Sequence record: LT598654.1
DNA: 64,000 nt
Reading direction: 5' to 3' (one strand)
Shown: one piece after another, positions 8,102 to 64,000 of the stretch
Layout of the letters: the number at the start of each line of letters is the position of its first letter
Position numbering within the stretch: the first letter of the stretch is position 1
Program-made: the position numbers and the translations under genes
The notes under the pieces: generated by a model
What the model was told of the DNA's origin: nothing
Seen by the model: only the letters and a program-made list of their open reading frames with translations
Database searches by the model: none

Positions 8102-10573
8102 CTACAACAATGTTTTAGAACCATCTAAGCTGTGCAGTTGCTTAACCGATTTAGGTTCACCGAACTTACGGTCACGAACCATTCGGATTTGAATAGTACC
8201 TTTCGGAACATCGATACCAATTACTTCCGCAGGTAAGAACACTGAACCTGATTTAATCGCGTACAGTGGAGCACCGAACGTAAGTGCTTTGGCATTGATA
8301 GACTCGTTAGATAGCTTAGCAAGTTCTTTTTCTTTCCGCGTTTTATCCGCAGGAGAAATTCCCTTACTTCGAATCTCTTCCACCAATCTCGCAATCTGTC
8401 CTTTGTTGCGCTCTCTGGTATCCAAGTTACGTTTAACTTCTAACAACTTCAAGCTACGTTCCTGCTGTTCTTTTGGAACAGTCTTCAAGGTCATAAAAAT
8501 AACAACACTGATCTTAGGAACTTCACCAGGCTTCTGACCAAGAACATCAACGCGACCTTTGATAGCCTTACCATAGATTCGTTGAATGCGAACAACAAAA
8601 TCTTTGGCTTCATTGATAAACTTCTTGTTTACCGTATCAGTGTTGAACACCAGATAGTAGAAACCTTTTGGCGATTTACGAACACGGTTACCCTTTAACT
8701 TTTTGGTATCGTGCGCAAAGATAGCTGTGAACTTCTTGTCGCGAATGATAGCTTCTTGGAGTTCTTCCATTGCAGCTTTTTCATTCCCAGGAAACACAGG
8801 TTCGTTAGGCTTCCAGTCGGTGTCATCGTAACGAGGTACTTCGATTGATTCATCGTAAACTACCAGCTTAGCAGGCTTGTAGTCTTTCTCCAACATGCGT
8901 CCCATAGTAGAGAACTTGTTGAATATAGCGCCTTTGATGTACGTAATCTTTTTACCATTAAGACGTTGAACAATATCGATAACGTCTTCGGTGTAGTAAC
9001 GAATAATCTTAGCAGTACTACCGATGTTCTTTTGGTTTTCCATGAAGCTGTTGAGGTTCTTTTTAACCTCTGCAACTGTCTCACCTTCAACTACAGCAAC
9101 CCGCTCCGGCTGATGTGCGCTAGGAACAAAGAAACCGAGTAAAGTAACAGAACGCTTTTTATTATTAGTGCGTACTGTCTTCTTTTGTATTTCTTTTTCA
9201 ATTTGTTCTTCGCCCTTCTTAACAGGTCGTCCAGGTGTAACGACTTGATTACTGGGCTTATCGATTTGTTTAATATCACCATTACCTCGCGTCAGCTTAA
9301 TTCCATCGCGCTTACCACCAAAACCTTTACACTGCTTAATAAGATTTTGTGCTTCGCGTTCACTAAGCTTCCATTCCTGACCAGGTAATTCGTCAGCAAG
9401 CGCAAGGTATACTGACTTAGCACGAGGGCTATAGCGAATACCAATAACAAGACCTGGTTCAACTTCTAAATCATAACTGCGGTTGTGCTTTTTAAAGTGT
9501 TTGCTTCGAGCACCATTGAATTTGTACCAAGCGTAGTTAAGCAAACTGAAATCTTTCTTAGCACTTTCACTTAACAGACTGGTTTGGTCTGCACTGATTT
9601 GCGAGGTACTTACAGATTCAGCAAAATCAATTGCTGCCTGTTTAGCCTGTTCGTCACCAGATACAATGAATGCACCATTGCCTTTAGGAATTGTTTCATA
9701 TCGGTCAACAGGAACAACTTTACCTTCACCTGGAGAAGGGAACTTGATAAAGACTTTGAACGTGTCTTCTGTTTCATCAACAGGTTTAACTTCAACGTCT
9801 TTGTATTCCATAATGTCAGAGTACCAGTCTTTGGTTTTCTGACAAGCATCTTCCATTGTGTTTGGTTTGAAGCCACAGCTTTCACGTTTTACTTCTGTGC
9901 CTTCACCGAAGCCGTTGATTGCTCTGTGCGACCAGCCGTACCACTTACCATCGAAACGACTTTTACCGATACTACATACCTTGTTATTGCCGCTAGCCAA
10001 CTCAGGCATAATTCCTTTTTCTTCACACAGGAACTTAGCAGTTTCGGCATCACCGATGTAGTCACCGTTAATGTTATACGCAGATACCAACTGAGTAGGG
10101 TTTTCTTTAGGGCTTCCCCAACCTAAAACACAATCCTCTTTTGCCAAATAGTAGCCGTATGCAGCAAGAGGAGAGGTATCTGTTTCGACAGTACGCTTGA
10201 ACATACCGCCTTTGTTTACGTAACCTTGTTCTTCAAGAGACTTAACGAAGCTATCAAATTCGTCTTCACTTGGATCACCGGTTGGGACATTAACAGGTGC
10301 TTCGGGTTTGCAGTTTTCATCTGTCTCGTCATCCCACTCAGACCAAAGACGGCTAGGTTCCCATACTTTAGGCTTGTGCGGAATACTTGTCTGCTGACCA
10401 ATAGGTTCTACGTCAAGTTTTTTAAACGTTTGGTCATTACGCTCAATAGATGATATTTGACTAACCGAACGGAAAGCACTGAGAGATTGGAAATCAAGTA
10501 GGTACAAGAATTGACCTGTACCTGACTCAGAACACAACCGACTATGTTTAGCCACTTGTAAAATAGGGAGCAT
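8102..10573 (-). CDS. Large multidomain basic protein, probable internal head protein
   Basis: Probable start MLPILQ (10573, AAGGA RBS). Contains a YAWYKF.G...L..CK.F.GK domain shared with ORFs 44941 and 57660, and several S-x-S-A/G motifs between domains. Confidence 0.7.
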   Translation of the reverse strand: MLPILQVAKHSRLCSESGTGQFLYLLDFQSLSAFRSVSQISSIERNDQTFKKLDVEPIGQQTSIPHKPKVWEPSRLWSEWDDETDENCKPEAPVNVPTGDPSEDEFDSFVKSLEEQGYVNKGGMFKRTVETDTSPLAAYGYYLAKEDCVLGWGSPKENPTQLVSAYNINGDYIGDAETAKFLCEEKGIMPELASGNNKVCSIGKSRFDGKWYGWSHRAINGFGEGTEVKRESCGFKPNTMEDACQKTKDWYSDIMEYKDVEVKPVDETEDTFKVFIKFPSPGEGKVVPVDRYETIPKGNGAFIVSGDEQAKQAAIDFAESVSTSQISADQTSLLSESAKKDFSLLNYAWYKFNGARSKHFKKHNRSYDLEVEPGLVIGIRYSPRAKSVYLALADELPGQEWKLSEREAQNLIKQCKGFGGKRDGIKLTRGNGDIKQIDKPSNQVVTPGRPVKKGEEQIEKEIQKKTVRTNNKKRSVTLLGFFVPSAHQPERVAVVEGETVAEVKKNLNSFMENQKNIGSTAKIIRYYTEDVIDIVQRLNGKKITYIKGAIFNKFSTMGRMLEKDYKPAKLVVYDESIEVPRYDDTDWKPNEPVFPGNEKAAMEELQEAIIRDKKFTAIFAHDTKKLKGNRVRKSPKGFYYLVFNTDTVNKKFINEAKDFVVRIQRIYGKAIKGRVDVLGQKPGEVPKISVVIFMTLKTVPKEQQERSLKLLEVKRNLDTRERNKGQIARLVEEIRSKGISPADKTRKEKELAKLSNESINAKALTFGAPLYAIKSGSVFLPAEVIGIDVPKGTIQIRMVRDRKFGEPKSVKQLHSLDGSKTLL

Positions 10574-10583
10574 AATTCGTCCT

Positions 10584-11258
10584 TTATTCTGTAGGAGTTG
10601 GAGGATTACCTTCATAAGCGGGCCAGTTAGCCCACGTTAAAGATTCTAATTCGGCAACAGTAGTACACGCAGATATTCGTGCCTTAGTTGCTCGACGTTC
10701 GCCTTCTAATTGACCAAAGAAAGTAGCAAGTGATACCTGGCTATCTGTCCAGTTGGCTATAATGGCTAACGCTAAATAATAGTAAGGGTCGCCTGTTACA
10801 TCGGCTTCACTTTTTAAAATATTGGGACACGGTACTTGTTCGTGTGTTGGTAAATCAGTTGTTGAATTCAAAGCCTGCCATTCTTCGACAGCAGTTTTAT
10901 ACTCCACCGCCGCAGCAAACTTTAATTCATAAACAGTTTTCTGAGTCAGAGGTGTAGTCTGACTTATTGTATGTAGAGCAAGCGCCTTCCTTTGAATGAT
11001 GTTGCATTCTTCCATGAGTGTAATTATCCAGGCATCGATTGTCGCAGCGACTCTGAATTCTTCAAGCTTACTGCTAGCCCATCTTGTACTATCGGAAGGA
11101 TTCTCCCATTGAAGACAATTGAACTCTGTTTGTGTTGGTAGTTTTACACACCGAACACGAATAGATGGATCTTGAATAGCAATAACCTCGACAAGAGACA
11201 GCACCCTTCTGTTTAAAGGGCTATCCCTTAGCTCGGCTGCAACGTCGTATGTGCTCAT
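10584..11258 (-). CDS. Tail-fibre assembly chaperone-like protein
   Basis: Probable start MSTYDV (11258; ATGA overlap). C-terminal YELK..AA...EADVTG...LA.AI...E.ERRATKARISACTT..EL resembles phage fibre-assembly proteins. Confidence 0.55.
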   Translation of the reverse strand: MSTYDVAAELRDSPLNRRVLSLVEVIAIQDPSIRVRCVKLPTQTEFNCLQWENPSDSTRWASSKLEEFRVAATIDAWIITLMEECNIIQRKALALHTISQTTPLTQKTVYELKFAAAVEYKTAVEEWQALNSTTDLPTHEQVPCPNILKSEADVTGDPYYYLALAIIANWTDSQVSLATFFGQLEGERRATKARISACTTVAELESLTWANWPAYEGNPPTPTE

Positions 11259-12964: not shown

Positions 12965-13600
12965 TTATTCAAACCAAGCTAAGTCGGCTGATATTGTTCT
13001 GGCTTTGCCATATTGTTTTGTATCAGGGTTAAGAATCTTAACCTTGATCTTTTTACCGGAGTAGTCAACGGCGATAAGTCTACCACGATGTTCTTTGTTT
13101 GGCCCAATTAAAATGTCTTTGTTGAAGTTGGATTGGGCTGCTTTTGTTTTCTTTGCATTGAAGAATATTGATTTTAGTCCTTCTGCGCGTTTTAAATGAT
13201 CGGCACACCATTTACGCGCATCTTCGGACTGAGCATCAGAAATTCGATACAGGTCAGTATTAATAAAGAACGCTCTGATTGCAGGTTCTTTATCAGCAAA
13301 CACAAAAGACTGAGGTTCCATATTAGGAGCAGTTCTGCTTACCAGGTATCTGTCATGTGCTAACCGATTAATCGTAGTAACCGAGTTAGACATTTTGCTT
13401 TTCCAGATACACCGATACAAACGGGATTCATCATCATGCACCCAACTGAGCGTGACGTTACCTGAATTGTGAACTTCTTGAGGGATTACACCGCCATTCT
13501 TTTGTGCAAGTTTGCGTTTGTGGTTTATCACATAGCCACTCTTTTCCGACTCACTGACAAAACTTTGGTCGGGTATAATGCTTAACAGTTTAACTTGCAT
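12965..13600 (-). CDS. Hypothetical (probable virion) protein
   Basis: 211 aa; FVSESE motif near the N-terminus; SH3-like beta-rich C-terminus resembling the end of the 8102 protein. Confidence 0.7.
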   Translation of the reverse strand: MQVKLLSIIPDQSFVSESEKSGYVINHKRKLAQKNGGVIPQEVHNSGNVTLSWVHDDESRLYRCIWKSKMSNSVTTINRLAHDRYLVSRTAPNMEPQSFVFADKEPAIRAFFINTDLYRISDAQSEDARKWCADHLKRAEGLKSIFFNAKKTKAAQSNFNKDILIGPNKEHRGRLIAVDYSGKKIKVKILNPDTKQYGKARTISADLAWFE

Positions 13601-13633: not shown

Positions 13634-13984
13634 CTACCATAGAATTTTTAGCGACCAGTACGCTGCTTGAAACTTGTCTTTGTACGCAGGTTTACCGTCT
13701 TTCTTCAAGATAGCCATATGGCGTTTTCGATAACGTGCTCTGCGTTCTTTATCTTTATGCGTTGTAAAGTCTTCATAGTCTTTGTGACCAAACTTAACAA
13801 GCTTAAAGCGGTTGCCCTTCTTTGCAAGAACAACCTTTTTATGTCGAGTCTTTCCTGGGTTATCAATAGGTTTATCGAATCCCGGGAATGTCATTCCTCG
13901 ATAGACTAGCTTCTTTCCTTTACGTTCCAGCTTTTCTACGCTTTGACCTTCTTGGTCTGCGCTTAGGCTTATCCAAAGTTGCAT
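13634..13984 (-). CDS. DUF5754-like basic protein
   Basis: Probable start MQLWISLSA (GAGG RBS). KKVV...VKFGHKDYEDFTTHKDKERRARYRKRH...AAYWSLKILW matches my recollection of the DUF5754 consensus. Confidence 0.65.
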   Translation of the reverse strand: MQLWISLSADQEGQSVEKLERKGKKLVYRGMTFPGFDKPIDNPGKTRHKKVVLAKKGNRFKLVKFGHKDYEDFTTHKDKERRARYRKRHMAILKKDGKPAYKDKFQAAYWSLKILW

Positions 13985-14720
13985 CGAGTTTTTCCTCGTT
14001 AACATTCGTTTGTTTGGTACGTAATTGCTGAATAGCTCTTTGCACACTAGGTTCCCTTAGCTTTTGTTTGAAACTACTATTTGGAAACCGTTTAAGATAT
14101 TCTTTCTGTTCAATAGTGTCTAACTTGTACAGGAAAGATAGTTCATCTATAGGTGCATCGAATTTATATTTTTCTGATAGCTGAGTAATGCCTTTATGTG
14201 GATTGAGGTTTGCAGCACAAAGACCTCCACGCCAAGCAAGTTTTGTTATCAACCATCTTCTAAGTTTACCTTCTACTTTAGAACGTCGTGCAGGAACGAC
14301 ATTGGTTAGCCAAACGGGCAACGTCTTTGTGCCTTCATCTAACCTAACTACTTCTGCATTGTAGTCCGAAGTATCAAGGATAAACAGTCCTGCTTTGTGT
14401 TCTTTACACAGGTCTTTAATGAACTGACCTTTGTCTGACTCGTACAGCCATTTAGGAATACAGAAATAAAACTTATTGCAAAAAGGTAGATACTTCTGCC
14501 ACTTACTATCAGTTGCGAAATCTTGCCAACAGCTTTTAACCTCGACAATGATAATCTCACCTTTCATATTGAAAGCAACTACGTCGGCGCGTAAATTACC
14601 TCCAGATTTAAGCCCTACTTCTTCATATACGCTGTAACCCTTACCGCAGTAATAACGAATGCAGGCTTCTGTAGACTTGTTTGTTATTGTTGCTCTACTA
14701 AAACTCTTATAGGCTTTCAT
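13920..14720 (-). CDS. mmcB: MmcB-like PD-(D/E)xK endonuclease
   Basis: LRADVVAF..KGEIIIVEVKSCWQDFATDSKWQKYLPFCNKFYF matches the MmcB pattern. Confidence 0.8.
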   Translation of the reverse strand: MKAYKSFSRATITNKSTEACIRYYCGKGYSVYEEVGLKSGGNLRADVVAFNMKGEIIIVEVKSCWQDFATDSKWQKYLPFCNKFYFCIPKWLYESDKGQFIKDLCKEHKAGLFILDTSDYNAEVVRLDEGTKTLPVWLTNVVPARRSKVEGKLRRWLITKLAWRGGLCAANLNPHKGITQLSEKYKFDAPIDELSFLYKLDTIEQKEYLKRFPNSSFKQKLREPSVQRAIQQLRTKQTNVNEEKLDATLDKPKRRPRRSKRRKAGT

Positions 14721-16835: not shown

Positions 16836-17207
16836 TCAGGCAAGAGTGCTTATAGGAGCAGCGTGAACCACAGTGCTTGTGACATTTTTTCCATTACTAC
16901 CTTTATAGATAACTGAATCACCTAACAAGGCGCTCGATACGCGACGGTCAACAAGGCTATCGAAAACAATGTTAGTTCCGTTGTCATCAAGTATTACCAT
17001 ATGCGTAGGCTTACCGTCAGACAGTTTACTAACCAAAGCAAATTGCATATTAGGCATACGCAAGTAGTTTTGTTTTGCGAAGTGCAAAGCCTTTGAGTAA
17101 CAGGAAGATACCAGTTTCTCTTTTCCAATAACCGCGTTGTGCAGTTGTTCAAGTCTTTCATCCAAAGACTTGGTTAGTGATATTGATATTAACATAGAGG
17201 CAAGCAT
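16836..17207 (-). CDS. Hypothetical protein (possible minimal papain-like fold)
   Basis: 123 aa; ISISL near the N-terminus; C(YSKA)...H(MV)...D order. Confidence 0.6.
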   Translation of the reverse strand: MLASMLISISLTKSLDERLEQLHNAVIGKEKLVSSCYSKALHFAKQNYLRMPNMQFALVSKLSDGKPTHMVILDDNGTNIVFDSLVDRRVSSALLGDSVIYKGSNGKNVTSTVVHAAPISTLA

Positions 17208-17234
17208 AGGGGAGACAAGCTCCCCTTTCCGTTA

Positions 17235-17762
17235 TTAGCTAAAGATTACTTCAAAATCAGTTGCAGAGTATTCACGCTGGTCAAGGTAACCACCGAGAAG
17301 TTTTAAGTCTGCTTCTGATTCTTCATCACCTGCTGTACCGAAGTAAGCAATAGGTGCATAGAAGTTTGACGTAGTAATGTCAGTGATTGTCATATTGGAC
17401 GCATCACCACCGTTTGACGTTACTGCGAACACAAACCAACCTGGAATACCTTCGTCAATATACTGGAAATCCGCAGGTGACTCAGACAGAGGCCACTGCA
17501 CCATTTTAACATTGGGGAATCGCGGAGCAAAGTCTTTGTCGTAAGCAGTTACCTGTAGACAAGTATCACCTTGAGCACTAGCCCAATTAAAGATAGCATC
17601 CATGCGAAGGTCACCGTTGCTGTTAATGTCGGCGTCTTTCATGGCATCAATGTCTGCACTTGTAGGTGGTGTACCTGTGAACATAGCCAGGATTTTAACA
17701 CCCGATGCAGAAAGGCGCGTGTAATTAGAGAAGCGAACAAAGTTATTTGAAACCTGAATCAT
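17235..17762 (-). CDS. Paralog-array virion protein, short form
   Basis: 175 aa; MFTGTPPT...GWFVF...GTAGDEESEADLKL. Confidence 0.8.
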   Translation of the reverse strand: MIQVSNNFVRFSNYTRLSASGVKILAMFTGTPPTSADIDAMKDADINSNGDLRMDAIFNWASAQGDTCLQVTAYDKDFAPRFPNVKMVQWPLSESPADFQYIDEGIPGWFVFAVTSNGGDASNMTITDITTSNFYAPIAYFGTAGDEESEADLKLLGGYLDQREYSATDFEVIFS

Positions 17763-45976: not shown

Positions 45977-46492
45977 TTAGGCGTCCCGTACATCATCAAA
46001 CGCGAATTCAACAGGAACTGGAATAGCCTGTGAAGACGAACCATCGAATGACATATCAGGTACAGTCTTAGGCCAGCAATTGACGATAGTAAACTCTTTA
46101 GCAATACTACCATCCTGCTTGAAGATACGGAAAGTACCGTTCTTAGCATAGTCTTCCTTGAAATTACCAAGCTGTGTGCTGTGGTCACGACAGAAAGTAC
46201 ACCACTGTTTTAGTGGAGTGTAGGTAGCCATTTCAGAGTTCTCAACAAACTCAACAGCCATACTACCGGTAACAGTAGATTTACCTGCGTGACGTACCGT
46301 ATGACCGAATACTTCAACAAGTACTTCTTCAATAGTAATACCTGGCTTGGTAGCAGTTTTACATTGAACACGGAAAACTTCTGTAGCAGACGAGTCTACA
46401 TCAGAAGGAAGTTCCGCGAAGATAAGCTCAAAGTTATCCGATAACAAAGGATCACCAATGTTAATCGCATCATCAAGTGTAGGTTTTGGCAT
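45977..46492 (-). CDS. Tail tube protein (T4 gp19-like)
   Basis: Directly after the sheath gene; CKTATKPG...HAGK...W...KEFTIVNCWP...VEFAFD. Confidence 0.88.
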   Translation of the reverse strand: MPKPTLDDAINIGDPLLSDNFELIFAELPSDVDSSATEVFRVQCKTATKPGITIEEVLVEVFGHTVRHAGKSTVTGSMAVEFVENSEMATYTPLKQWCTFCRDHSTQLGNFKEDYAKNGTFRIFKQDGSIAKEFTIVNCWPKTVPDMSFDGSSSQAIPVPVEFAFDDVRDA

Positions 46493-53524: not shown

Positions 53525-53714
53525 CTGAATCTCCTCAGGAGTACTGTTAATGATACAAAGACGCTTTATTTTGCTGCACAGAGCAAGAGCCCTTTGCATA
53601 CTAAAAAATTAAGTATAAACAAAAAATATATAGAGAATTTTTGAGTAAAAATAGCATGTTTTTTCAATTATTTTTTGAGTGATTTTTAGCGTATTTTTGA
53701 CAAATTTTAGCCAT

Positions 53715-53740
53715 AAAAAAGCCCCGAATTAACGAGGCTT
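53715..53740 (-). terminator. Rho-independent terminator
   Basis: AAGCC..CG/CG..GGCTT stem with A6 on +; downstream of ORF 53759. Confidence 0.6.
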
Positions 53741-53758
53741 AGAATACGTTAAAGTTTC

Positions 53759-55534
53759 TTAATCATGGAAGAAAATAATAGCCTTTGTACCTCTTTTATC
53801 AAAGGAATTTATATGTATACGCCCAGCATTAGGCAACGTTCCTTCGTACACAGTACCGCCTACTAAACTCATGGGTTTAGCCTTGAGCGAGTCTCCTACT
53901 TTAGATAAAAGTTTTGAAAGCGCAGCCTTAGTTACTTCTGTACTAAAGCCTTTGTTATCCTTATAATCGAGTCGTTTTAAAGAAGTTCCTTTAATACCGT
54001 ACTCTTTCAAAAAATTACGTGCTCTTGCATCAGCAGTAAGGTCAGCACCAGGTTTATCCGAGTTTTTAATTTCTTCACGCTTAGCTTTGATCTTGTTCTT
54101 CAACTTAAGGACTTTATCCTTTTCACTAAAGTCCCAGTTTCGGTTAGATGTACGCCGCAAGTCTGTCAATTCATCCTGTAAGCGTTTTAACTCTAGTTTA
54201 AGAGTGTCTACTGTTTTAGGTTTAGCCGAACGCTTACTTGGAGAACTCTTTGTTTTGGTAGAACGAGTTAGCGTATTACGTCCCTTACCTGTAAACGCAG
54301 CGAATTTCTTACTGTTAAGAATTTTCTTAATGATCTGCTCAGGCACGATAGGGTTCGGTAAGTCAAAACTTAAATTACCGTCGTAGGGAGAATCGACACG
54401 CTTAGAGGTATTTCCTCGCTTCTGCGTCTTACCTACACCAGCAATAACCTTTCCTTTGTAGACTTGGATAGTCATTTTAACGCTTTTCTTTGAAGGGTGT
54501 GTTATAGATATAGAACCTTCGTTGGTAGCTGTAACATCATATCCTTCAGGAAGTAACTCTTTAGCCTTCGCTGCCATAGGCTTAAAAGCACCACGCGCAG
54601 TCTTAACAGGTTGCTTGGCTTTGTCTAAAGCTTTTGACTTATCTACGCTCTTTCCAGAAGTAGGCTTATCGGCTACCTTAGGTTCACTAGGTTCAGTGCC
54701 TCCATTCTCAACAAGCGTTAGTATACGACGAGCAGAGATACGAGGACCAATGTATGCCTTAGTCATGCGAGTAGCGCCTTTAGGCAAGGAGAACATGTGC
54801 CAACCCGGAGCAAGCATATTAGGAGCGCGTTTCTTGCGTCCCATCTTTGCACCCGCAGCAGAACCGCCTCGACCGCGAGGTGCAGCAGATTCAGAATCGA
54901 TACCCGCTTGGCTGCTTGATGTAGAGAGAAACTTGTTAGCTTTAGACGGTGTATCGATAAGAATGTTCTTACGTGCCTTTTGTTCAACTACAGTCTGGGC
55001 TTCGTCTTCGTCGAGACCTAAATCTGTAAGAGAAACAACAGGGTTACGACCATTCTTAAACAATGCCTTTGCTTTAGCTAGGTCACCTTTGTCACCTGTC
55101 AAGTCTACGGAAGAACCATCTTTAAACTTGAAGAAACCGTACATAACAGGAGACTTAGCAGTAACAGCACCTTTGGCATTAAGGAATTCTTCTTCATAGC
55201 TAATAGCTTCTGCCATCAATGTATCAATAGGTTCTTGATACTCGCCGTTGCCAATCGCTTCTTCAAAAGCAGAATGCAAAGCAAGTTCTTCTGCCGAATA
55301 ATCAGATGCAATTGCTTCCATTGAACGCAAAGCAAAAATCTTTTGCTTCATGCTCGGTGTATACTTGGCTTCTTTGGAAAGGCGTACAATAGAGAACACA
55401 CCACGTGCGCTCTTTAATACATAACGACCAGGCTGTGCATAAGCAACACGCAGTTTTGGTGTACTGTTCTTAACAGCCGTATCTATAGTTTTAGGTAACG
55501 CAGGTTTCTGCGCGGAGATTGATACGATTTTCAT
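53759..55534 (-). CDS. Large basic probable internal head protein
   Basis: 591 aa, K-rich; MKIVSISA start; two domains shared with ORF 55544. Confidence 0.7.
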   Translation of the reverse strand: MKIVSISAQKPALPKTIDTAVKNSTPKLRVAYAQPGRYVLKSARGVFSIVRLSKEAKYTPSMKQKIFALRSMEAIASDYSAEELALHSAFEEAIGNGEYQEPIDTLMAEAISYEEEFLNAKGAVTAKSPVMYGFFKFKDGSSVDLTGDKGDLAKAKALFKNGRNPVVSLTDLGLDEDEAQTVVEQKARKNILIDTPSKANKFLSTSSSQAGIDSESAAPRGRGGSAAGAKMGRKKRAPNMLAPGWHMFSLPKGATRMTKAYIGPRISARRILTLVENGGTEPSEPKVADKPTSGKSVDKSKALDKAKQPVKTARGAFKPMAAKAKELLPEGYDVTATNEGSISITHPSKKSVKMTIQVYKGKVIAGVGKTQKRGNTSKRVDSPYDGNLSFDLPNPIVPEQIIKKILNSKKFAAFTGKGRNTLTRSTKTKSSPSKRSAKPKTVDTLKLELKRLQDELTDLRRTSNRNWDFSEKDKVLKLKNKIKAKREEIKNSDKPGADLTADARARNFLKEYGIKGTSLKRLDYKDNKGFSTEVTKAALSKLLSKVGDSLKAKPMSLVGGTVYEGTLPNAGRIHINSFDKRGTKAIIFFHD

Positions 55535-55543: not shown

Positions 55544-56728
55544 TTAGCGAGTTTCTTTTATGTAGATAGCTGGAATCCAATGTCTTCTATTACGACTTCC
55601 TTGAATAGCAACTTTACCATTTTTGGCATCTACGGCAACAGCAGTCTCCCAAGAAGACCCTCCGCTAGTCCACTGGACCAGTATCTCTCGTTGCTTACCA
55701 TCGAAGTGTATGTCCTGCATCAACTTCATAATGTCTATGCGCTCGGCTGCCTCATAGTTTTGCTTATCGTGAAGGTCTCTTGCTTCTTTATTGCTTTGAG
55801 ATTTACCGCCCGCTTTAAGAAGAAGTTTAGTGAATTCAGAATAAGGAACCTGAGGGTACTTATTGTACTTATCTAGGTCAGTGTCTTGACGAGAGGCTTT
55901 AAACAGTTTACCTGTATATTGACCTATCGATTGAGCGATAAAACTTCTACCTGTCTTCTGCTGGATAAACACGATGATAGCTTGTGTGTCATCACGGCTA
56001 CGTCCGGTCGGTATGATACGTCCATAAGGAGAACTGGAGTACGTTTCAGGCGTAATGTGTTTCAGGATAGCATCAGGTTGGATAGGACCAGAGTAACGGT
56101 AACCTAGTTCACCCCACACTTTGTCTACCAGAATGTAAGAGTTATAGGTTACTGTCTCAACCTTAGGCTTTTTGGTTACCGTTTCCTTAGGCTTTGTGTT
56201 GCGACGAGAACGCTTAACGGGCGCCTCCTCTACAACCTCTTTAGGTTTACGAGAACGTCTAGTCGGTTTTTCAACAGCGTCTTCTTTTGGAACTTTACCG
56301 CCGTTGTCGATAATAGCAGACAGAACCCGTGAACCCACTGTGCGACCTAAGCTGGTTTTGATTACACGATTCGTATCTTTCAATCGAGTGAACAACCACC
56401 AGCCTGCTTCAAGCATGTTAGACGCGCGGGCTGACTCAGATTCTAAGTCTTGGTATGCACCGTTACCTATAACAGAAGCCAATAAAGAGTTGTCTCCGGC
56501 TAAAGCTTCCATTTCAGTACGAGCAAACAGAACGGCAGCCATGCGAGGTCTGTAAGTCAGAGGCTTTTTAAATCGAGCAATAACAAACTCACCTCGGGTA
56601 CTTTGTAGAACGTAACGTCCAACCTGAGAGTGCTTTACTCTAAGCTTAGGTTTGCTTTTATCGATAGTCGCCTGGATAGCTCTGGGTATAGGTGCTTTAG
56701 ACCTTGCAGAGATAGATATGATTTTCAT
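55544..56728 (-). CDS. Basic probable internal head protein, paralog of ORF 53759
   Basis: 394 aa; MKIISISA; PKLRV...GRYVL.S.RG.F and NML..GW..F...ENGG/DNGG blocks shared. Confidence 0.7.
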   Translation of the reverse strand: MKIISISARSKAPIPRAIQATIDKSKPKLRVKHSQVGRYVLQSTRGEFVIARFKKPLTYRPRMAAVLFARTEMEALAGDNSLLASVIGNGAYQDLESESARASNMLEAGWWLFTRLKDTNRVIKTSLGRTVGSRVLSAIIDNGGKVPKEDAVEKPTRRSRKPKEVVEEAPVKRSRRNTKPKETVTKKPKVETVTYNSYILVDKVWGELGYRYSGPIQPDAILKHITPETYSSSPYGRIIPTGRSRDDTQAIIVFIQQKTGRSFIAQSIGQYTGKLFKASRQDTDLDKYNKYPQVPYSEFTKLLLKAGGKSQSNKEARDLHDKQNYEAAERIDIMKLMQDIHFDGKQREILVQWTSGGSSWETAVAVDAKNGKVAIQGSRNRRHWIPAIYIKETR

Positions 56729-56730: not shown

Positions 56731-57201
56731 CTAACCTTTATATGTGTTGTATAGTTTTTTAAGGCCTTCCAGTTTTCCGGGATAACCTTTCTTAGTGAGA
56801 AGTGAAAAGAATTCTATAGGCTTGAGGTCACCCAGAGGATTATCATCCTTAAGTTCAGCGCGTGGATGTACATAATCCTCTACGAAGTCCTCGTAGCTTA
56901 GTTCATACTCTTTACACGTTTCGATTAGTTCAAGAAATAACTTCCATTTCTTTTCTTCGATACCGTTTAGATCAACAAGCTCGTAACCTTTAACGTCCTT
57001 TTCAGATAACTCTTTAGGATACGCCAGGATGCCGTGTCTGTAATCACGCTTATCAACGTTAGAAAATTGGGGGTATTTATGAACTTCATCTGCTTGGATG
57101 AACTCAACCGGTTGTGGATTAGTCGGTTGAGCACCTATTGAATACGGTCGAAACTTCAAACCGTAGTAAAACTTTTTACCTAGACTTATGCTGATCAGCA
57201 T
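56731..57201 (-). CDS. Protein with DarA C-terminal-like domain
   Basis: Probable start MLISISLG; YYGLKFRPYSIGAQP...RHGILAYPKELS..DVKGYELVDL resembles the 'defence against restriction A C-terminal' pattern as I recall it. Confidence 0.55.
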   Translation of the reverse strand: MLISISLGKKFYYGLKFRPYSIGAQPTNPQPVEFIQADEVHKYPQFSNVDKRDYRHGILAYPKELSEKDVKGYELVDLNGIEEKKWKLFLELIETCKEYELSYEDFVEDYVHPRAELKDDNPLGDLKPIEFFSLLTKKGYPGKLEGLKKLYNTYKG

Positions 57202-57650: not shown

Positions 57651-57659
57651 ACCCTGTTA

Positions 57660-58610
57660 CTACATAGATTCAGTGCTTCCTGAATACTCACCGTCTTTTA
57701 CAAACACATTAACAAAATACTTCTCAGCAATCTCCCAACCTAACGTAGTCGAGAATCCTCGTGCTGATCTTCCGTGTACCATAGCTTCACACATAATAGC
57801 GAAAGCTTCATCCCACCATGGGTTGTTGTAACCGGGGTGATTAAACTGGTCCTTATGTACCTGCTTAGCCGCCAACAGTTTCTTAAACTTCATCTTGTCA
57901 GAGTTACGCAAAACATTCTTAACTACGTAATGACCTAATTCGTGAGTCAAAACCTGAGCAACAACCTTTGCGTTAACTGACCCGAACAACATGGTTAACT
58001 GTCGAGGGTTAATAACAATGTACACATCATACAGGCCTGAACGCCCGTTAAAAGTATGGATAATACACGTACCCATTTCTGTACTTACACCTAACTTAAT
58101 AGGTCTTTTGAACTTAACCTTAGTACCAATCATTGTCAATGCTTTATCTGTAAGCTTAACAATGTTTGAAGTCATAGGATGAATCCAACCGAAGTCAGTG
58201 CGCTTGGCTTCTTCTAATTGAGTAACAACTAGAGGAACACTGCCGCTGATTTTAGGTCGAATGAGTTCTTCTTCCTCTGGGTCAGGGTCAGGGTTTTCGT
58301 TGGTAGCTCCAACGGGAACACTCTTGGGGAACGTTTCATTGAACGTTTCGTCACCCGCCTGAATGTCAACACCGTTGACCTTGCCTAAGAAGGGCTTACT
58401 GCTGGTAACCAAGAGTTCAGCTTGACCTCTGTCCAGTTCAATACGCTGTTCCATATCTTTAGTGAACAGAAAGAACTTGTCTTTGTTCTGAACCAGAGAA
58501 TATACATGACGCATACCGATTATAATCTTGGTATTCTTGCTTTCGTATGATACCGGAGAGGTTCCGATATAACGAAACCATCTGCCTGTTGCTAGTACGT
58601 TCACTTTCAT
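57660..58610 (-). CDS. Zincin-like metallopeptidase with N-terminal virion domain
   Basis: VLTHELGHYV (HExxH) with downstream DEAFA; the N-terminal WFRYIG...L...SKPF.GK domain is shared with ORFs 8102 and 44941. Confidence 0.75.
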   Translation of the reverse strand: MKVNVLATGRWFRYIGTSPVSYESKNTKIIIGMRHVYSLVQNKDKFFLFTKDMEQRIELDRGQAELLVTSSKPFLGKVNGVDIQAGDETFNETFPKSVPVGATNENPDPDPEEEELIRPKISGSVPLVVTQLEEAKRTDFGWIHPMTSNIVKLTDKALTMIGTKVKFKRPIKLGVSTEMGTCIIHTFNGRSGLYDVYIVINPRQLTMLFGSVNAKVVAQVLTHELGHYVVKNVLRNSDKMKFKKLLAAKQVHKDQFNHPGYNNPWWDEAFAIMCEAMVHGRSARGFSTTLGWEIAEKYFVNVFVKDGEYSGSTESM

Positions 58611-58624: not shown

Positions 58625-60310
58625 TTACTTTTCGTATTTTAATAAATTAGCTTGCTTTTCGATACTAGCAGGCATTCTAACACCAACTTGGTCGTAGAAA
58701 TCTTCAAGAATTCCAGGATCGATATAGTTAGCAATAGCGGTGTTAACAGTAAGCTTGCCATTAGAGAAGTGTCCAAGTTCTTTAGCTACTTTCTCCAGCG
58801 CACCCTTCAACCATTTATTAACTACAGCACTAGATGGAGTGGTCTTTCTAGTTAACAACGGACTCTTATCCAAAATCTGCTTAGCCATTCGGGTGCCCCT
58901 CAAAGTTCTGAACTTGTGTACGGTCACACCTTTTGGCATTCCCAGAGATTCAAGGAAACGATTCAAAGCATTGCCTGTAACACCCTTACCTCTGAAAGTA
59001 ATAAGGAGGTCTTTGCGCTGTTTGCCTTCAGCTAACGCATCAAGTGCAGCAATAACAAGTTTTAGATTTGGATTAGACGCAACGAGCTTGTGTTTTTGAA
59101 CCTGCGCTTTCTTTCCTTCGTACTCGATAAGCCTATCGCGACCCCGCTTTTTATACTGACCGCAGAGCAGAGTAGTAATACCGTAAGTCTTCTGACCTTT
59201 AGTTTTATTACCCTTGCTTCCGATACGAGCACTTGTTTGGTAAACAAGTTCAGCCAACATTGCAAGAACACCATCTTTAGTGTCAATACCGTCCGCTTTG
59301 AATTTAGCTAACCAACGTTTACGGATTGAGTCTGCTTTCTTATCAAACTCGGCAACCTTTTCGAACTTAGCTTTGGTAGTGTTTGACTTATACGCTAGGG
59401 TATACACTCGGCTATAGTTCTGAGCCATAGGGGCTTTGGTTTCGCATACATAGGTATTGTCTTCTTTAGGGTCGTAAGATGGGTTCATCTTAACATCACC
59501 TACAGGAGTACCGTTCAATTGAAGACCTGTTACAGTATAGTAACGCATGTTGTCATCAATCATGCCATCGAATTCCGCGGGAACAGGATGGTGTGCGATA
59601 CCTGCACTCTTTAATTCTTCGTATACCTTGCGAACAGGAAGATAAGGCTTACCTGAACTACGCACAAGATTCATAACAAAATCTTTAGGTACAGCATTCA
59701 TTGCAGAGCGTAACCGGTTGTACTCTTTGAGTAGAGGAGTACCTTTATGTGCGCTCCGGGTATCAGCATCAATGCTAATATCAGTACCGCCTAGTTCAGC
59801 AGTAACCTTTTTAAGCTTGTTCACTACGCTTGCTTGGTTACCTACCTCAGCAGTAAATGCCTTGCTCAGAGAAATGTCATTCAAGGCACTGACGTTTTTC
59901 TCCATAGATTTGACAGCACGGTGTCTAGTGCTTTCGTTATCCGATAGAGCGACGGTATTGAAGTTTTTAATCAAACCGAGTTCTTCTCTGGACACAGCCG
60001 TTTCATTATCCAAAGAAGTTTTCATTACTTTACGCAAAGACCTAGCCAAGTCCATTGCTGCATCAACCATATCCTGGTCTTCAACAAGAGTACGTCCAGC
60101 CAACAAGTCTTCGGTCATATCTTCCCAAGCCTCTATGTCCAAGTCGAACTTAGCAACAAAGCTTTTAGCATCTTTAACCCACTTGGGTAATTGTGCTTTA
60201 ATATCAGGACTTAGTTTAAAGCCTTCGGTGTCACTGTAGGCCGTTACGACCAACACTTTAGTAAATGACTTACTAGTGACACGGGCTACCCTTGACAATG
60301 TGATTAACAT
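58625..60310 (-). CDS. DNA topoisomerase IB with N-terminal extension
   Basis: Probable start MLITLS. Catalytic pentad in order: TSARIG (R), KK (K), HKFRTLRG (R), LGH (H), NYIDP (Y). Confidence 0.9.
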   Translation of the reverse strand: MLITLSRVARVTSKSFTKVLVVTAYSDTEGFKLSPDIKAQLPKWVKDAKSFVAKFDLDIEAWEDMTEDLLAGRTLVEDQDMVDAAMDLARSLRKVMKTSLDNETAVSREELGLIKNFNTVALSDNESTRHRAVKSMEKNVSALNDISLSKAFTAEVGNQASVVNKLKKVTAELGGTDISIDADTRSAHKGTPLLKEYNRLRSAMNAVPKDFVMNLVRSSGKPYLPVRKVYEELKSAGIAHHPVPAEFDGMIDDNMRYYTVTGLQLNGTPVGDVKMNPSYDPKEDNTYVCETKAPMAQNYSRVYTLAYKSNTTKAKFEKVAEFDKKADSIRKRWLAKFKADGIDTKDGVLAMLAELVYQTSARIGSKGNKTKGQKTYGITTLLCGQYKKRGRDRLIEYEGKKAQVQKHKLVASNPNLKLVIAALDALAEGKQRKDLLITFRGKGVTGNALNRFLESLGMPKGVTVHKFRTLRGTRMAKQILDKSPLLTRKTTPSSAVVNKWLKGALEKVAKELGHFSNGKLTVNTAIANYIDPGILEDFYDQVGVRMPASIEKQANLLKYEK

Positions 60311-60318
60311 AAAATACC

Positions 60319-60837
60319 TTACCAAATGTTTCCATCAAGCGCGAAAGGATCTCTGCGCTTAAAATTAACTTTATTACCGTTTCGTTTTTCGATGTAGTCT
60401 ACCAAGTCTTTGTAGTCTCGCATCAACAAGGGGAAGCTTAAACGGAAAATAGCTCCAGGTGTATAGAAGTTTGCGAACTCGTCGGGTACATGAGACATTG
60501 CATAAGCAACCAGTTCACTACAGAACCAGGCATCAGGTGCATGAGTAAACGTTCTAAAGAAAATTCCTCTGAGTCCGTGTAAGTCAAAAGGCTGCCCTAC
60601 TAAGGATTCAGCCTTTTCGATACTTCCTGCTACAAAACGGAAAGTAATCTGCCTGTAACGCAATTGGAATTCTTCTAAAGGAATAGAGTGTACACCGTTA
60701 CCACCCATTGCTTCTATCACACGTAGATTCTCAGGGTCTCGGTCATCAAGGATACCGCAGTGAGACCAAATAGAACCTGTTCTTACTCTGATTGTTTTTG
60801 AAATCCAGTGAGAGTTATTCCCAAATACCAATATCAT
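60319..60837 (-). CDS. Permuted papain-like NlpC/P60 (YiiX/YebB) protein
   Basis: WSHCGI precedes VIEA...GQPFD...WFCSELV (His before Cys). Confidence 0.85.
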   Translation of the reverse strand: MILVFGNNSHWISKTIRVRTGSIWSHCGILDDRDPENLRVIEAMGGNGVHSIPLEEFQLRYRQITFRFVAGSIEKAESLVGQPFDLHGLRGIFFRTFTHAPDAWFCSELVAYAMSHVPDEFANFYTPGAIFRLSFPLLMRDYKDLVDYIEKRNGNKVNFKRRDPFALDGNIW

Positions 60838-60856
60838 TAGATTACTTCCGATAGAG

Positions 60857-61333
60857 TTAGCGGTCTGTTAAAGACACGCCTACCTCGCGAACGAGTTCAT
60901 TAAAGGCCTTGACTCGTTTACCTCGAGGTAGGGATTTAATGTAATCGCTATTCTGGATTACGTTCAATACTGCCGTACCTGCTTCGTCCAAAAGGTTCTG
61001 TTTGCTGATTTGCGCAACAGCCTGGTCAATCAACACACGAACAGACAACTTGCTTTTACCAGGACCTTCGTCATAGCAGCTATCTACAAAGTCTAAGTCT
61101 ACTGGGTCATCAGCCTCAGTAATCTGTTCAAAGCGTTTGTAGTGCTTAATAAACAAAGCATGTGCAGAAGTAACAGGTCTTGATTCGGCAACGTCCTGCA
61201 CAAACTTTGATACTGCGGCACGGTACTCGCTTTCTGCATTAGGTCTGCCTAAAAACATTTTTTGGTATGCAACCAAAATAGCAAGAAACGCAGGGTCATA
61301 GGAATTTTTAGATTCACTTAGAAACACTTTCAT
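60857..61333 (-). CDS. Hypothetical probable head protein
   Basis: 158 aa; MKVFLSES start. Confidence 0.7.
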   Translation of the reverse strand: MKVFLSESKNSYDPAFLAILVAYQKMFLGRPNAESEYRAAVSKFVQDVAESRPVTSAHALFIKHYKRFEQITEADDPVDLDFVDSCYDEGPGKSKLSVRVLIDQAVAQISKQNLLDEAGTAVLNVIQNSDYIKSLPRGKRVKAFNELVREVGVSLTDR

Positions 61334-61335
61334 AC

Positions 61336-62124
61336 TTACCTCATGGACATTACTTGATTAGCGTTATGGTGATTTGATACGTATGCTGGATCTTCAACAG
61401 CACTGTTCTCAAAACCTGTAATCATCTGTACTTTACGGAAAGCAAGACGACCACCCATTTCATAAGTAGGTTTATTAATTACAGTGTGGCTACATGTTGC
61501 ACGTAAATTTTCTTTACGTACAGTGTGACCGCAGATACTACAAGTATATGCCTGATACCACATACCGATTGAATATGTGTTCAGTTCGTTAGTCAGTATA
61601 CGATTAGCAAGAACAGGGTCTTTAGTACGGTCAAACGCCAACAATTGAATGACACGAGCATGGTTACCTACGAAATTAGGCATACCCTTCATATAAACAT
61701 CAAGGATAACACCTTTAGCTTTGGTAATATCTTTGTTGTCGTGTTCTTGGTGAGTGGGCTTACCTTTCCAAGTTTTGTACGCCAACATACCTAAGTCAGG
61801 ACGGAAACGTAATGCTTCTGCCGTAGTCAAGCAATCGCCGTTTGTATTCGGAATGTCCGTAACAACAGAGGGAACCGGAACCATAACGTAATCGCTAAGG
61901 CGAGGACTTAACAGGTAATGCTCAGCAGCCATAGGCAACCAAACGTTTGCATCGATAACGATGTTGTCGTCTGCACCTGTTGCGCTAGGTTTAAAAGTAA
62001 TCTCTTTACCCTTACCTGCGTCTTTTAACTCAATTGGTTTCTTGAACGCGCTAATGTCAAACGAAGAACTTTGGAAACTGTTTTCTTCATTAACAATTAA
62101 CTGCTCTGCAATGTTCATTTTCAT
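61336..62124 (-). CDS. Prohead maturation protease (HK97/herpes-like fold, Zn-finger insert)
   Basis: PNTNGD, WKGKPTHQEH, YSIG, CSICG...CSH and FENSAVEDPA, the motif order of large-phage prohead proteases. Confidence 0.7.
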   Translation of the reverse strand: MKMNIAEQLIVNEENSFQSSSFDISAFKKPIELKDAGKGKEITFKPSATGADDNIVIDANVWLPMAAEHYLLSPRLSDYVMVPVPSVVTDIPNTNGDCLTTAEALRFRPDLGMLAYKTWKGKPTHQEHDNKDITKAKGVILDVYMKGMPNFVGNHARVIQLLAFDRTKDPVLANRILTNELNTYSIGMWYQAYTCSICGHTVRKENLRATCSHTVINKPTYEMGGRLAFRKVQMITGFENSAVEDPAYVSNHHNANQVMSMR

Positions 62125-62133
62125 AGTGTTTCC

Positions 62134-62781
62134 TTAACACGCAAGATAGTTATCAATGTCGGTGCCTTCGATAAACCAAACTCCATCTTCTTTGATTTCA
62201 TGGGAGCGTGATTTACCTGCAATAAAGCTTGCGTCAATAGAGTACAGCTTAGACAAACCGGGAATAAAGTTCTCTTGCAGGATAGTAGTTGCAACAGCGA
62301 GGTCTTCAAACATATAAATGTCAGACGTAGCAGATTCAGCAAACGTACCTGTTAAGTCAACAAGGTATCCGCCTACGAATTTACGCTGAGGGAAAGTATC
62401 AATGTAGACTCGCAGGTTACGAACAAAGGTACTAATCTTCTTGGTACTGTCTACCTCAAACTTTTCCAATGCACGGTCTAAAGAGTCCAGGCAGATAGTG
62501 ATGTTCTGCAATGCAGCCTGGTCATAGCGAGAAATATAACCTGACACGGCATCCATACAGTGGCTAAGTTCACTGACTAATTCGTCGTAGCTAACCTGGT
62601 CAAGAAGGTCTACACCACGCTTCTCATTACCGTCTTCGTCTTTAATCGCGCTATCACGCATAGCTTTTGTATAAGCATAGAAAGTAGCGAACGTTCTGAG
62701 CGCACCTGAAAGGTAATAACAAGAGGCAAACTTCTTGTGGGGAAACGCACTCTCGGCGGCTAAAGTTAATTGGACTTTCAT
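62134..62781 (-). CDS. Hypothetical protein
   Basis: 215 aa; MKVQLTLAAESA start. Confidence 0.7.
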   Translation of the reverse strand: MKVQLTLAAESAFPHKKFASCYYLSGALRTFATFYAYTKAMRDSAIKDEDGNEKRGVDLLDQVSYDELVSELSHCMDAVSGYISRYDQAALQNITICLDSLDRALEKFEVDSTKKISTFVRNLRVYIDTFPQRKFVGGYLVDLTGTFAESATSDIYMFEDLAVATTILQENFIPGLSKLYSIDASFIAGKSRSHEIKEDGVWFIEGTDIDNYLAC

Positions 62782-62790
62782 AAAGAACCC

Positions 62791-63114
62791 TTAGAGTTTA
62801 AAATAGTCAACAATGGTCTGTAGAACAGAAACAAGAGCTTTTTTAGACTTAGTGTTACTAACAGAGGATATTCGAACACGATTTCCTTTGCCTGTTAGAA
62901 TAACAATATTCCCTGAATCAATGTTTCTTCCTACTCTGAGTTCTTTACCTTTTAGTAGAACTTCAACACCTACATACTTAGAAGTATTAGACGGGTTAGG
63001 GTGATCGAATTCAGATAGTGTAGTAGGTACGTCAACACCTAATGCAACTAAATTGGCAGCCAAGTCTTTTAAAAACAGGTTACCGTTGCCAGTGGACTTT
63101 AAATTCACCTTCAT
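62791..63114 (-). CDS. Hypothetical protein
   Basis: 107-aa ORF in the operon. Confidence 0.65.
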   Translation of the reverse strand: MKVNLKSTGNGNLFLKDLAANLVALGVDVPTTLSEFDHPNPSNTSKYVGVEVLLKGKELRVGRNIDSGNIVILTGKGNRVRISSVSNTKSKKALVSVLQTIVDYFKL

Positions 63115-64000
63115 AACATTTCCTTAACTAGTGAATGCCTAATCCAGGTACGACATTCATCAAAAGTTTGTCGAATAGGATTTAATAAAACAACTTGGTT
63201 TGAATTAACAACGGTATAGGGCTGTGAACTATCACGACCAGACCTGTAAGCACTTTCGTTGAAGCCTTCAAATAATTTGATAACCCAACTACGACGCGAC
63301 TTACCGTTACCGTTAATCTTTGGATCAGATTCAACCTGACCGATCTGTCTACCAGAAAACATTACATCGTAGCGAGTACGGTCTGCATGTGCAGTTCGCT
63401 TTTGTGCAGGACAGACTTTAAAACTGATTCGAGGAATAGCACCTGATTCAGACTCCAACATATCCAATTCACCTGGAATGTCAATCTCGTCCTCTTCATC
63501 ATCCTCCAGTTCAGAGTCAATGTCTTCTTGGCTAGGCTTGTACCCTTCTTCAATCATTTCATACCTTGACTGTAAGAGGGCTACTTTCTCACTCAGACTG
63601 TTAATATCGATCTGTTTGAACCAATCCAAGTAACGTTGGATAAAGGTATCTAAGGTATCGAGTACTTTGGGGTCTTCGTCTTCGAATTCCTCGTCTTCCT
63701 CAGGTTCCTCTTCCTCAGCACTCAAGCTTCGTAACCTAACGTCAACCATTGAGTCGAACCATTGCGTTATGTCAGATAGCCATTGGTTTTCTTCTGTGTC
63801 TTTTCTGACACTAGAGTTAGATTCCATTTGAGGCTGGTCTGCACCCACTACGTCTTTGAGTTCTTTGTAATTGGTAGGCCCCATAAATATACTAAGAAGT
63901 ACGTGACCTACTGTTTTACCTGTTGAAGCGTATCGCTGTCTACCTAAAAGGTTTTCAGTGATAGAGTCAAGAATCTTGGTTGCTTTACGTGCTCCTGCTT
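63111..64000 (-). CDS. C-terminal part of a larger acidic protein (5'-truncated by window edge)
   Basis: The frame of the 63884 ATG stays open to base 64000 (AGARKATKILDSITENLLG...SIFMGPT); acidic tracts and ESNSS/SLSA/ESESG motifs. Confidence 0.7.
   Translation of the reverse strand, partial: AGARKATKILDSITENLLGRQRYASTGKTVGHVLLSIFMGPTNYKELKDVVGADQPQMESNSSVRKDTEENQWLSDITQWFDSMVDVRLRSLSAEEEEPEEDEEFEDEDPKVLDTLDTFIQRYLDWFKQIDINSLSEKVALLQSRYEMIEEGYKPSQEDIDSELEDDEEDEIDIPGELDMLESESGAIPRISFKVCPAQKRTAHADRTRYDVMFSGRQIGQVESDPKINGNGKSRRSWVIKLFEGFNESAYRSGRDSSQPYTVVNSNQVVLLNPIRQTFDECRTWIRHSLVKEML

Follow-up and report, generated by a model that had tools for sequence, protein, structure and literature searches.

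A conserved small-x-small N-terminal leader in jumbo phage NCTB and its relatives: a candidate prohead-protease site and loading tag

In T4-type phages, a short leader targets internal proteins to the capsid, and the prohead protease removes that leader. The assemblin-type enzymes of herpesviruses are capsid maturation serine proteases that cut after a small residue. Here, we describe a short N-terminal leader ending in two small residues around a free position (small-x-small, usually S-x-S), carried by proteins encoded in and around the head module of phage NCTB. The stretch analyzed, hereafter the window, is 64,000 nucleotides long and matches positions 124001-188000 of record LT598654.1 (Phage NCTB) at 100% identity; the record is circular, 257,877 bp in length (a ~258-kb jumbo phage), and its origin is surface water. 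Evseev et al. use the name Trichodesmium phage NCTB and group it with the phages Lu11, PaBG, Dickeya JA/AD1, Erwinia Y3, Yoloswag, and Alexandra (PMC7412058). Coordinates refer to the window unless given as record positions, open reading frames (ORFs) are named by their lower coordinate, and the genes of interest in the window all lie on the minus strand.

The NCTB clade resembles the T4-type system in that a short leader precedes unrelated small, mostly basic proteins whose genes lie in the head module, the same class of site occurs in the protease leader and, in many relatives but not cleanly in NCTB, in the capsid propeptide, and the putative cargo includes anti-defense functions. It departs from that system in that P1 cannot be Glu, some leaders span no more than 5-7 residues, the protease is without a Pfam, PDB-sequence, or PDB-fold match, and cleavage is putative. 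Head proteolysis is also known from giant phages, with SPN3US gp245 and the phiKZ-type enzymes; gp245 cleaves propeptides behind an A-X-E motif and favors Ser at P1' (PMC10052503). Putative propeptides on numerous head and ejection proteins, a three-residue motif with a free middle, and a small P3 are shared with the clade, whereas the third position in the clade is Ser/Ala and not Glu, the phages and the protease family are different, and the evidence presented here is comparative. HK97 gp4-type proteases (COG3740; XkdF-like) match the clade protease in predicted fold, in an invariant His and Ser, and in a gene position upstream of scaffold-like and capsid genes; the clade protease differs in its want of a Pfam match, its extra zinc-ribbon, and its nearest fold relatives, which are uncharacterized (PaBG, phiRSL1, and Phage G). 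The possible likeness to assemblin-type enzymes is the proposed cut after a small residue; no fold or sequence match of the NCTB protease to them was obtained.

Precedents also exist for the cargo. DarA of phage P1 is cleaved and packed in the head, and a set of polyvalent-protein domains (DarA_C, KMPT-N, SprT-like, Tad6, DUF5754, and papain-like peptidase) is delivered with the DNA (PMC5512222). This domain repertoire is common with NCTB, where the SprT-like match is weak, but the NCTB domains are mostly encoded by separate small genes with their own leaders and not within one giant protein. The leader is not mentioned in Iyer et al. 2017 (PMC5512222). Apart from a statement that PaBG proteins are processed, no description of the cleavage specificity or leader of the clade was found in the searchable literature. 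Pairing a leader with a prohead protease that removes it is an established principle; novel here would be the motif, the lineage of the protease, and the set of cargo proteins.

A portable linear N-terminal tag exists in these phages. It is conserved, independent of the domain that follows, and disordered in structure models. The NCTB genes carrying the tag, a variant of it, or internal copies are listed below (pI, isoelectric point; aa, amino acids).

55544-56728, minus strand: basic protein (pI 10.1), start MKIISISA; paralogue of 53759
53759-55534, minus strand: basic protein (pI 10.0), start MKIVSISA; paralogue of 55544
56731-57201, minus strand: DarA_C protein (Pfam PF18789, E = 4e-11), start MLISISL, domain from residue 9
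58625-60310, minus strand: type IB topoisomerase (TopoIB; Pfam PF01028), start MLITLS (MLITLSR)
60857-61333, minus strand: 158-aa protein, start MKVFLSES; tagged genes at the same position in relatives
62134-62781, minus strand: 215-aa acidic protein, start MKVQLTLAAESAF; orthologues read ..RESSF.. and ..RESSLF..
44941-45621, minus strand: KMPT-N protein (Pfam PF20294), start MLISLSA, between two tube paralogues
45624-45941, minus strand: very basic 105-aa protein (pI 11.7), ..IPSESV at residues 8-13
16836-17207, minus strand: small protein, MLISISL after the second ATG
13634-13984, minus strand: DUF5754 protein, start MQLWISLSA from ATG 13984 (DUF5754 found in 13634-14047)
12965-13600, minus strand: 211-aa basic protein without a family match, ..FVSESE at residues 15-20
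8102-10573, minus strand: polyvalent protein of 823 aa with Tad6 (PF25188) and KMPT-N (PF20294)
63111-64000, minus strand: C-terminal portion of a protein of 483 aa, with the ORF extending to window-equivalent 64562
record 9071, plus strand: tagged ORF outside the window with the narrow N-terminal pattern
record 193152-194894, minus strand: start MLKLNLLSISA, then a KMPT-N domain; the seventh tagged ORF

An initial annotation of the window had read such strings as a hydrophobic-S-x-S-[A/S/G] code. Every string it quoted is present on the minus strand where it was placed, including FVSES (residues 15-19 of the 13600 ORF), IPSES (residues 8-12 of the 45941 ORF), and the junction strings CSESG, QSLSA, and LSESA (ORF 8102), ESNSS, RSLSA, and ESESG (ORF 63111), and DSESA and ESESA (53759 and 55544). 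MLITLS, LSESK, and IPSESV fall outside that motif. The comparisons do support a short N-terminal code that is independent of the following domain, both in NCTB and in relatives, and that is common to the protease leader, interdomain linkers, and, in most relatives, the capsid propeptide site.

In NCTB, the domains found after the leader are unrelated to one another (KMPT-N, DarA_C, TopoIB, and DUF5754). Tagged proteins are mostly basic (pI 9-11.7), and in the clearest leaders the small-x-small motif ends at residue 6-8. Their genes cluster about the protease gene, over ~8 kb in NCTB versus a single gene in Y3. Most leader-bearing starts have an AAGG/GAGG-type ribosome-binding site. MLISISL at 57201 is the GenBank start of the DarA_C protein, which also matches phrog_1926, "released from the phage upon host infection." The same string at 17195 begins at an internal ATG, 4 codons past ATG 17207. 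For the DUF5754 protein, which also matches a PHROG family labeled "DNA pilot," ATG 13984 has a GAGG Shine-Dalgarno sequence, and the GenBank start is 13894. The leader of ORF 63111, ..ELVSLSN, lies beyond the window end.

Over the whole NCTB record, the narrow pattern [ILVM][ILVT]-S-[ILV]-S occurs 14 times versus 7 expected, and its internal rate agrees with composition. Within 1-3 residues of an in-frame ATG, the pattern is found in 6/353 genome-wide ORFs versus ~0.09 expected (~60-fold); these six ORFs start at 55534, 56728, 57201, 45621, 17195, and record 9071 (+). We also compared the head modules of PaBG, Y3, JA11, Yoloswag, and AD1 and of seven metagenomic relatives found via protease homologues. 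Across 12 related loci (344 proteins), hydrophobic-S-x-S-[ASGFT] appears in the first 25 residues 32 times versus the 6.5 expected from the internal rate (4.9-fold), a count that treats orthologues as independent, which inflates its significance. The control patterns T-x-T, A-x-A, and E-x-E showed no excess in the first 25 residues at the same 12 loci. Because codon choice differs between N-terminal copies, the leaders are not DNA repeats, and a DNA-level repeat or a promoter overlapping the start codons is likewise ruled out. A Sec or lipoprotein signal peptide does not fit either, since it needs a hydrophobic core of ~10-15 residues and the leaders have 3-5 hydrophobic residues.

The leader persists in orthologues that are just 25-50% identical and differ in the flanking residues. 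For example, orthologues of 44941 share ~25% identity and the same location between two tube paralogues, and they begin with MLISLSA (NCTB), MLIFLSESA (Y3), MLFFVSVSA (JA11), MLLFISASA (Yoloswag), and MLILLSESA (AD1). KMPT-N proteins of the Y3 gp149 family start with MVLSESAS, MLSQSAT, MHSLSAT, or MVLSVSAS, and TopoIB proteins with MLITLSR (NCTB), MLVSLSR (L013), or MHTSLSA (PaBG); L-numbers (L013, L015, L017, L018, L020, L021, L022, and others) denote compared loci, L013 being a TARA contig. In these loci, the leader also precedes Acb1 (MKPIHISLSAG at L017:10967 and MLTHMVSLSS at L018:10756), NUDIX (MAKVTLSLSAV at L020:2426), and a SprT-like/KMPT-N protein (MRLLISISAAA at L022:1565). L020 has five consecutive tagged genes after the protease gene, with starts MKSLSAK, MKIFISVAN, MKILVSTSAT, MEILVSTSAE, and MKIFISVSSN. 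The head module of Phage G has no comparable leaders. In the AlphaFold2 (AF2) model of 44941, residues 1-7 have a predicted local distance difference test score (pLDDT) <50 and the fold starts at about residue 11-15; the Pfam KMPT-N match begins at residue 14, past the leader.

The alignments also define which positions of the motif are constrained. Across the orthologues and 117 leaders of protease homologues, the middle residue can be L, I, V, A, Q, K, R, H, T, or N. Because this residue is free and some leaders are devoid of Glu (MLISLSA and MKIVSISA), Glu is excluded as P1; cleavage after Glu within S-E-S, which would suit Y3 and several NCTB sites, is ruled out by the same free middle residue. 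Replacements of the motif Ser in orthologues are Ala and, occasionally, Cys, Asn, Val, or Leu. The constant features are thus a short hydrophobic leader and a small residue at both motif positions, with Ser usual and not obligatory. The rule is therefore better described as small-x-small than as a code that demands Ser, and of the Ser-P1 motif first proposed, the exclusion of Glu stands but the requirement for Ser does not.

Several starts are apparently annotated too late, masking the leader: BN7874_239, BN7874_177, Yoloswag gp143 (in-frame MLISLSQNQDWW upstream of the annotated start), and PaBG O152_gp262 (MLLSLSLAS upstream of the annotated start). Besides the protease, loci with annotation problems include 13634-13984, record 193152-194894, L011:18812, and L008:18253-19644. 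Acb1 (anti-CBASS), NUDIX, PAS-GGDEF-EAL, and HD-domain genes adjoin the head protease in relatives (L017:10967-11506, L018:10756-11271, L021:11898-12476, L020:2426-2896, L015:18217-20376, and L022:8881-9441). The leader is present on the L017 and L018 Acb1 proteins and on NUDIX; PaBG-type Acb1/LigT proteins (PaBG and L021) start with MQIKVAM and MMIKLSM instead.

The candidate processing enzyme is encoded near the end of the window.

61336-62124, minus strand: predicted prohead serine protease (GenBank "Phage endolysin"); phrog_18299, E = 4e-91

Judging from its modeled fold, this protein is an HK97-type prohead serine protease, and its GenBank name is a misannotation. The AF2 model has a pLDDT of 85 and a predicted template modeling score (pTM) of 0.82. 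In BFVD, a database of predicted viral structures, the closest fold matches come from PaBG, phiRSL1, and Phage G (gp19); further matches are to prohead serine protease, COG3740, and XkdF entries (E = 1e-4 to 1e-7, TM ~0.4-0.5). The protease has no Pfam match at E <= 0.01 and no NCBIfam match. Searches of the PDB returned no match for a five-sequence profile and none by Foldseek at E <= 1e-3. Across 46 sequences, H128 and S185 do not vary, and a Cys/His zinc-ribbon insert is present. The protease is encoded upstream of the scaffold-like protein and the capsid protein. The likeness to T4-type proteases drawn in the initial annotation is not backed by these data: no resemblance to a T4 gp21-type protease was found in the Pfam, PDB-sequence, and PDB-fold searches, and the third motif position is Ser/Ala.

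The protease itself carries the motif. Its residues 1-25 are disordered (pLDDT <50) and hold S19-x-S21-F22, and these three residues are the only invariant ones of the variable N-terminus in five clade proteases. Among 117 homologues (45-84% identity), the first motif column has 100 Ser and 9 Ala, the second 98 Ser and 12 Ala, and the column after it 94 Phe; ~85% of the sequences read [S/A]-x-[S/A]-F. The residue between the two Ser columns is hypervariable, and a hydrophobic residue lies two places upstream.

Further copies occur in the capsid region.

49741-50823, minus strand: major capsid protein (family search), N-terminally extended by ~70 aa
50870-51571, minus strand: virion structural protein (family search); the PaBG homologue is gp81
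51587-53599, minus strand: acidic, Ser-rich 670-aa protein (pI 4.1), upstream of the capsid gene

Near residue 32, the capsid protein shows a conserved block, AL-S-x-S-TGE[FI]NA, with S-x-S in 69/120 homologues. When the capsid profile is aligned to chain 6wkk of the Phage G capsid, the match starts at profile position 79, opposite residue 6; from this offset and a Phage G gene of only 282 aa, the first ~73 residues of the clade capsid protein are taken to be an extension. As a guide to the mature N-terminus, chain 6wkk was uninformative, its gene itself being just 282 aa. In PaBG, the capsid protein loses ~20% of its mass on maturation, several virion proteins run as multiple bands (14 gel bands), with processing stated, and gp81 was found in several bands (PMC7412058). 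The PaBG virion bands placed on the compared genes are gp80, gp81, and gp83 only. The 51587 protein contains 21% Asp+Glu and 11% Ser, with weak zinc-finger-like matches near residues 114-146. It may be a scaffold; no ATPase family in Pfam or NCBIfam accounts for its "ATPase" label in PHROGs and RefSeq.

Internal copies lie at domain boundaries. An N-terminal domain (1-95) and a second domain are common to 53759 and its paralogue 55544, and ESESA (residue 97 of 55544) and DSESA (residue 214 of 53759) both sit in the linker before that second domain. ORF 8102 is laid out as CSESG (residue 15), QSLSA (residue 30), Tad6 (138-322), LSESA (residue 335), and KMPT-N (347-414), placing LSESA between the two domains; its Tad6 (anti-Thoeris) match is strong (PF25188, E = 1e-41), and ~400 aa have no family match. 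In the ORF 63111 family, ..ES[ED]S[GAS] before the C-terminal domain is kept in 5/6 sequences with variable flanks. A hydrophobic-E-S-[DE]-S-S site is similarly kept in 5/8 sequences of the 51587 family.

The tag is a short disordered leader that usually runs Met, then Lys/Leu/Glu, then alternating hydrophobic residues; a small-x-small element, mostly S-x-S, closes it, and the next residue is Ala, Ser, Gly, or Phe. We propose that the prohead serine protease (61336-62124) would recognize and cut at small-x-small, and the N-terminal leader would double as an address carrying accessory proteins into the prohead. The trimmed proteins would stay with the DNA and then be injected, and the linker copies would allow multi-domain proteins (ORF 8102, 53759, 55544, 63111, and 51587) to be cut into pieces. 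That the small-x-small element is both prohead-protease cleavage site and loading tag has, in our estimate, an even chance of being correct. We infer the cleavage, its position, its enzyme, and the packaging of tagged proteins from sequence comparison. The initial annotation had described an injected toolbox. The proteins are indeed mostly basic, with domains typical of injected proteins (DarA_C, KMPT-N, DUF5754, Tad6, and TopoIB), but packaging is presumptive, and its interpretation is overall partly supported. Homologues of the protease and capsid protein number in the hundreds in marine and other metagenomes. A broader proposal, that a large, mostly uncultured jumbo-phage clade uses a protease cutting after a small residue and a leader serving as a universal loading tag that lists the injected toolbox, is offered tentatively and with some doubt. 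If so, a leader of 6-20 residues would have Acb1, Tad6, NUDIX, and DarA-like proteins, which are otherwise familiar as anti-defense factors expressed in the host, arrive pre-made with the DNA, together with TopoIB.

Several observations weigh against cleavage and loading through this element. The loose motif [ILVFMW]-S-x-S-[ASG] occurs 14 times versus ~8 expected in the 20,529 residues of the window, with matches scattered over head and non-head ORFs, including tail-fibre-like ones. S-x-S-[AGS] in the first 25 residues is found in 2/21 head-block ORFs versus 15/332 others (Fisher p = 0.27), and the claim that the loose motif marks head-module proteins thus fails; the suggested check, motif enrichment in head versus non-head ORFs, found none in NCTB. 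From the original observation, the enrichment of the narrow ATG-proximal leader survives but that of the loose motif does not. Nor is the tag limited to head-module genes, as had been supposed, since it is also borne by 44941 (tail module), 16836, record 9071 (+), and record 193152 (-); the sheath, said to be without such an N-terminus, carries S-S-S-A there. In NCTB and its nearest relatives, the first capsid site is one residue short (ALSSNGE). The region at the HK97-fold boundary is hypervariable among the 120 homologues, reading H-S-x-S-[ASG] in Erwinia/Dickeya phages and ..IKQESVTSA.. in NCTB, so the capsid cleavage site nearest the boundary could not be fixed. The motif Ser is replaced in close 44941 homologues (MLLVLAA, MLIVLAA, and MLILLAA) and in L013 (DarA_C protein MLVSLCA; 55544 counterpart ..ILSVNQ), and the L015 protease leader reads ..SEAF; PaBG gp83, a virion protein identified by matrix-assisted laser desorption/ionization, starts MLIKINLLEAVAAK. 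Besides the inflated pooled count, we found no experimental virion N-termini for clade members in the accessible literature.

The leader might instead serve only in targeting or docking, as a short, uncut amphipathic beta-strand joined by strand addition to some component of the prohead, the pattern reflecting strand geometry. Hydrophobic and small polar residues do alternate, Ser gives way to Val or Leu in close homologues, and the leader is free in both AF2 models. Moreover, in many protease homologues the motif lies only 2-4 residues past Met, where a "propeptide" would be trivial, so the segment could be a pseudo-substrate or docking strand; this too counts against cleavage. However, S-x-S-small is also found in acidic internal linkers (..LESESG and ..VESDSS) and in the capsid propeptide, where an N-terminal strand would be senseless, and processing of PaBG virion proteins is reported (PMC7412058). 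We regard docking alone as unlikely. A further point against the prohead protease as the cutting enzyme is that two other peptidases are encoded in the same module.

57660-58610, minus strand: KMPT-N-like N-terminus plus a weak SprT-like metallopeptidase match, without an S-x-S leader; phrog_36535 and phrog_37079
60319-60837, minus strand: papain-like Peptidase_C92 (Pfam PF05708), without a leader, adjoining tagged genes

Cutting by one of these is, to our reading, quite improbable, the C92 protein being the weaker candidate. A 57660 homologue directly follows the protease gene in Erwinia/Dickeya relatives, and the L013, L015, and L020 head modules contain others. In PaBG, the corresponding position is taken by gp83, which is found in virions, though no sequence match to NCTB 57660 was obtained; a role for metallopeptidase domains of this kind in processing polyvalent proteins was proposed by Iyer et al. 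2017 (PMC5512222). C92 is likewise present in NCTB-like phages. Against this, the motif is found in the protease's own leader in most homologues and in the capsid propeptide, which are classic prohead-protease substrates; Erwinia/Dickeya phages keep the tag with no C92 gene annotated in their head modules; and the SprT match of 57660 is weak (NF003339, E = 0.004, 16.7 bits versus a cutoff of 113). The absence of any function, with the motif arising from chance, Ser-rich composition, paralogy, or a flexible post hoc definition, would fit the chance-level loose motif in NCTB, the two examples (53759 and 55544) that are paralogues sharing an N-terminal domain, the several quoted examples outside the motif, and the start codons picked among alternatives (17195 and 13984). 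It is very improbable given the N-terminal enrichment in NCTB, retention of the tag across divergent orthologues with variable flanks, its presence on unrelated domains in independent metagenomic genomes, and control patterns without enrichment. Finally, the leader could be a structural part of the domain behind it, such as the first KMPT-N strand, as three of the clearest cases precede KMPT-N at similar spacing. This is hardly credible, as the Pfam domain starts past the tag, the first seven residues of the 44941 model are disordered, and the tag also occurs before DarA_C, TopoIB, Acb1, and NUDIX and in the protease leader.

The remaining head- and tail-module genes identified in the window are as follows.

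46508-48118, minus strand: sheath (family search)
45977-46492, minus strand: tube (family search)
44270-44803, minus strand: second tail-tube paralogue

The two tube paralogues flank 44941-45621 in NCTB and in Erwinia/Dickeya phages; in PaBG, both tube genes are adjacent, without a tagged KMPT-N gene between them. KMPT-N, DarA_C, Tad6, DUF5754, and Peptidase_C92 all pass Pfam cutoffs in NCTB and adjoin packaging genes, and ORF 8102 adjoins thymidylate kinase and DUF5754 genes. The 62134-62781 protein weakly matches part of a branched-chain aminotransferase family in NCBIfam (E = 3e-5); this match, at 23 bits below a cutoff set at 262, is probably spurious. An AT-rich 160-bp gap at 53599-53759, upstream of 51587, is a possible transcription signal, as is a GC-rich hairpin, ggggagcttgtctcccc, at 17195-17260, just upstream of the 16836 ORF start. 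A QueD-like gene (34914-35978, minus strand), together with QueE and GTP cyclohydrolase I genes at record 215-223 kb, suggests 7-deazaguanine modification of NCTB DNA. Outside the window, at record 96-104 kb and 210-212 kb, GenBank lists intein-containing tail proteins and a second sheath-like gene (record 210039-211679).

For annotation, the analysis corrects the "endolysin" name given to the protease in GenBank and several start codons placed too late. If the proposed cleavage and loading are true, a non-Glu specificity for small residues, mostly Ser, would be added to the phage head-protease repertoire and would provide a test case for specificity shifts within the HK97-type protease fold. 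Packed or injected proteins could then be predicted from sequence only for an uncultured jumbo-phage clade, among whose members is a phage of Trichodesmium, a cyanobacterium that forms blooms. Virion cargo could then include functions directed against CBASS, Thoeris, and restriction, which would change when counter-defenses can act.

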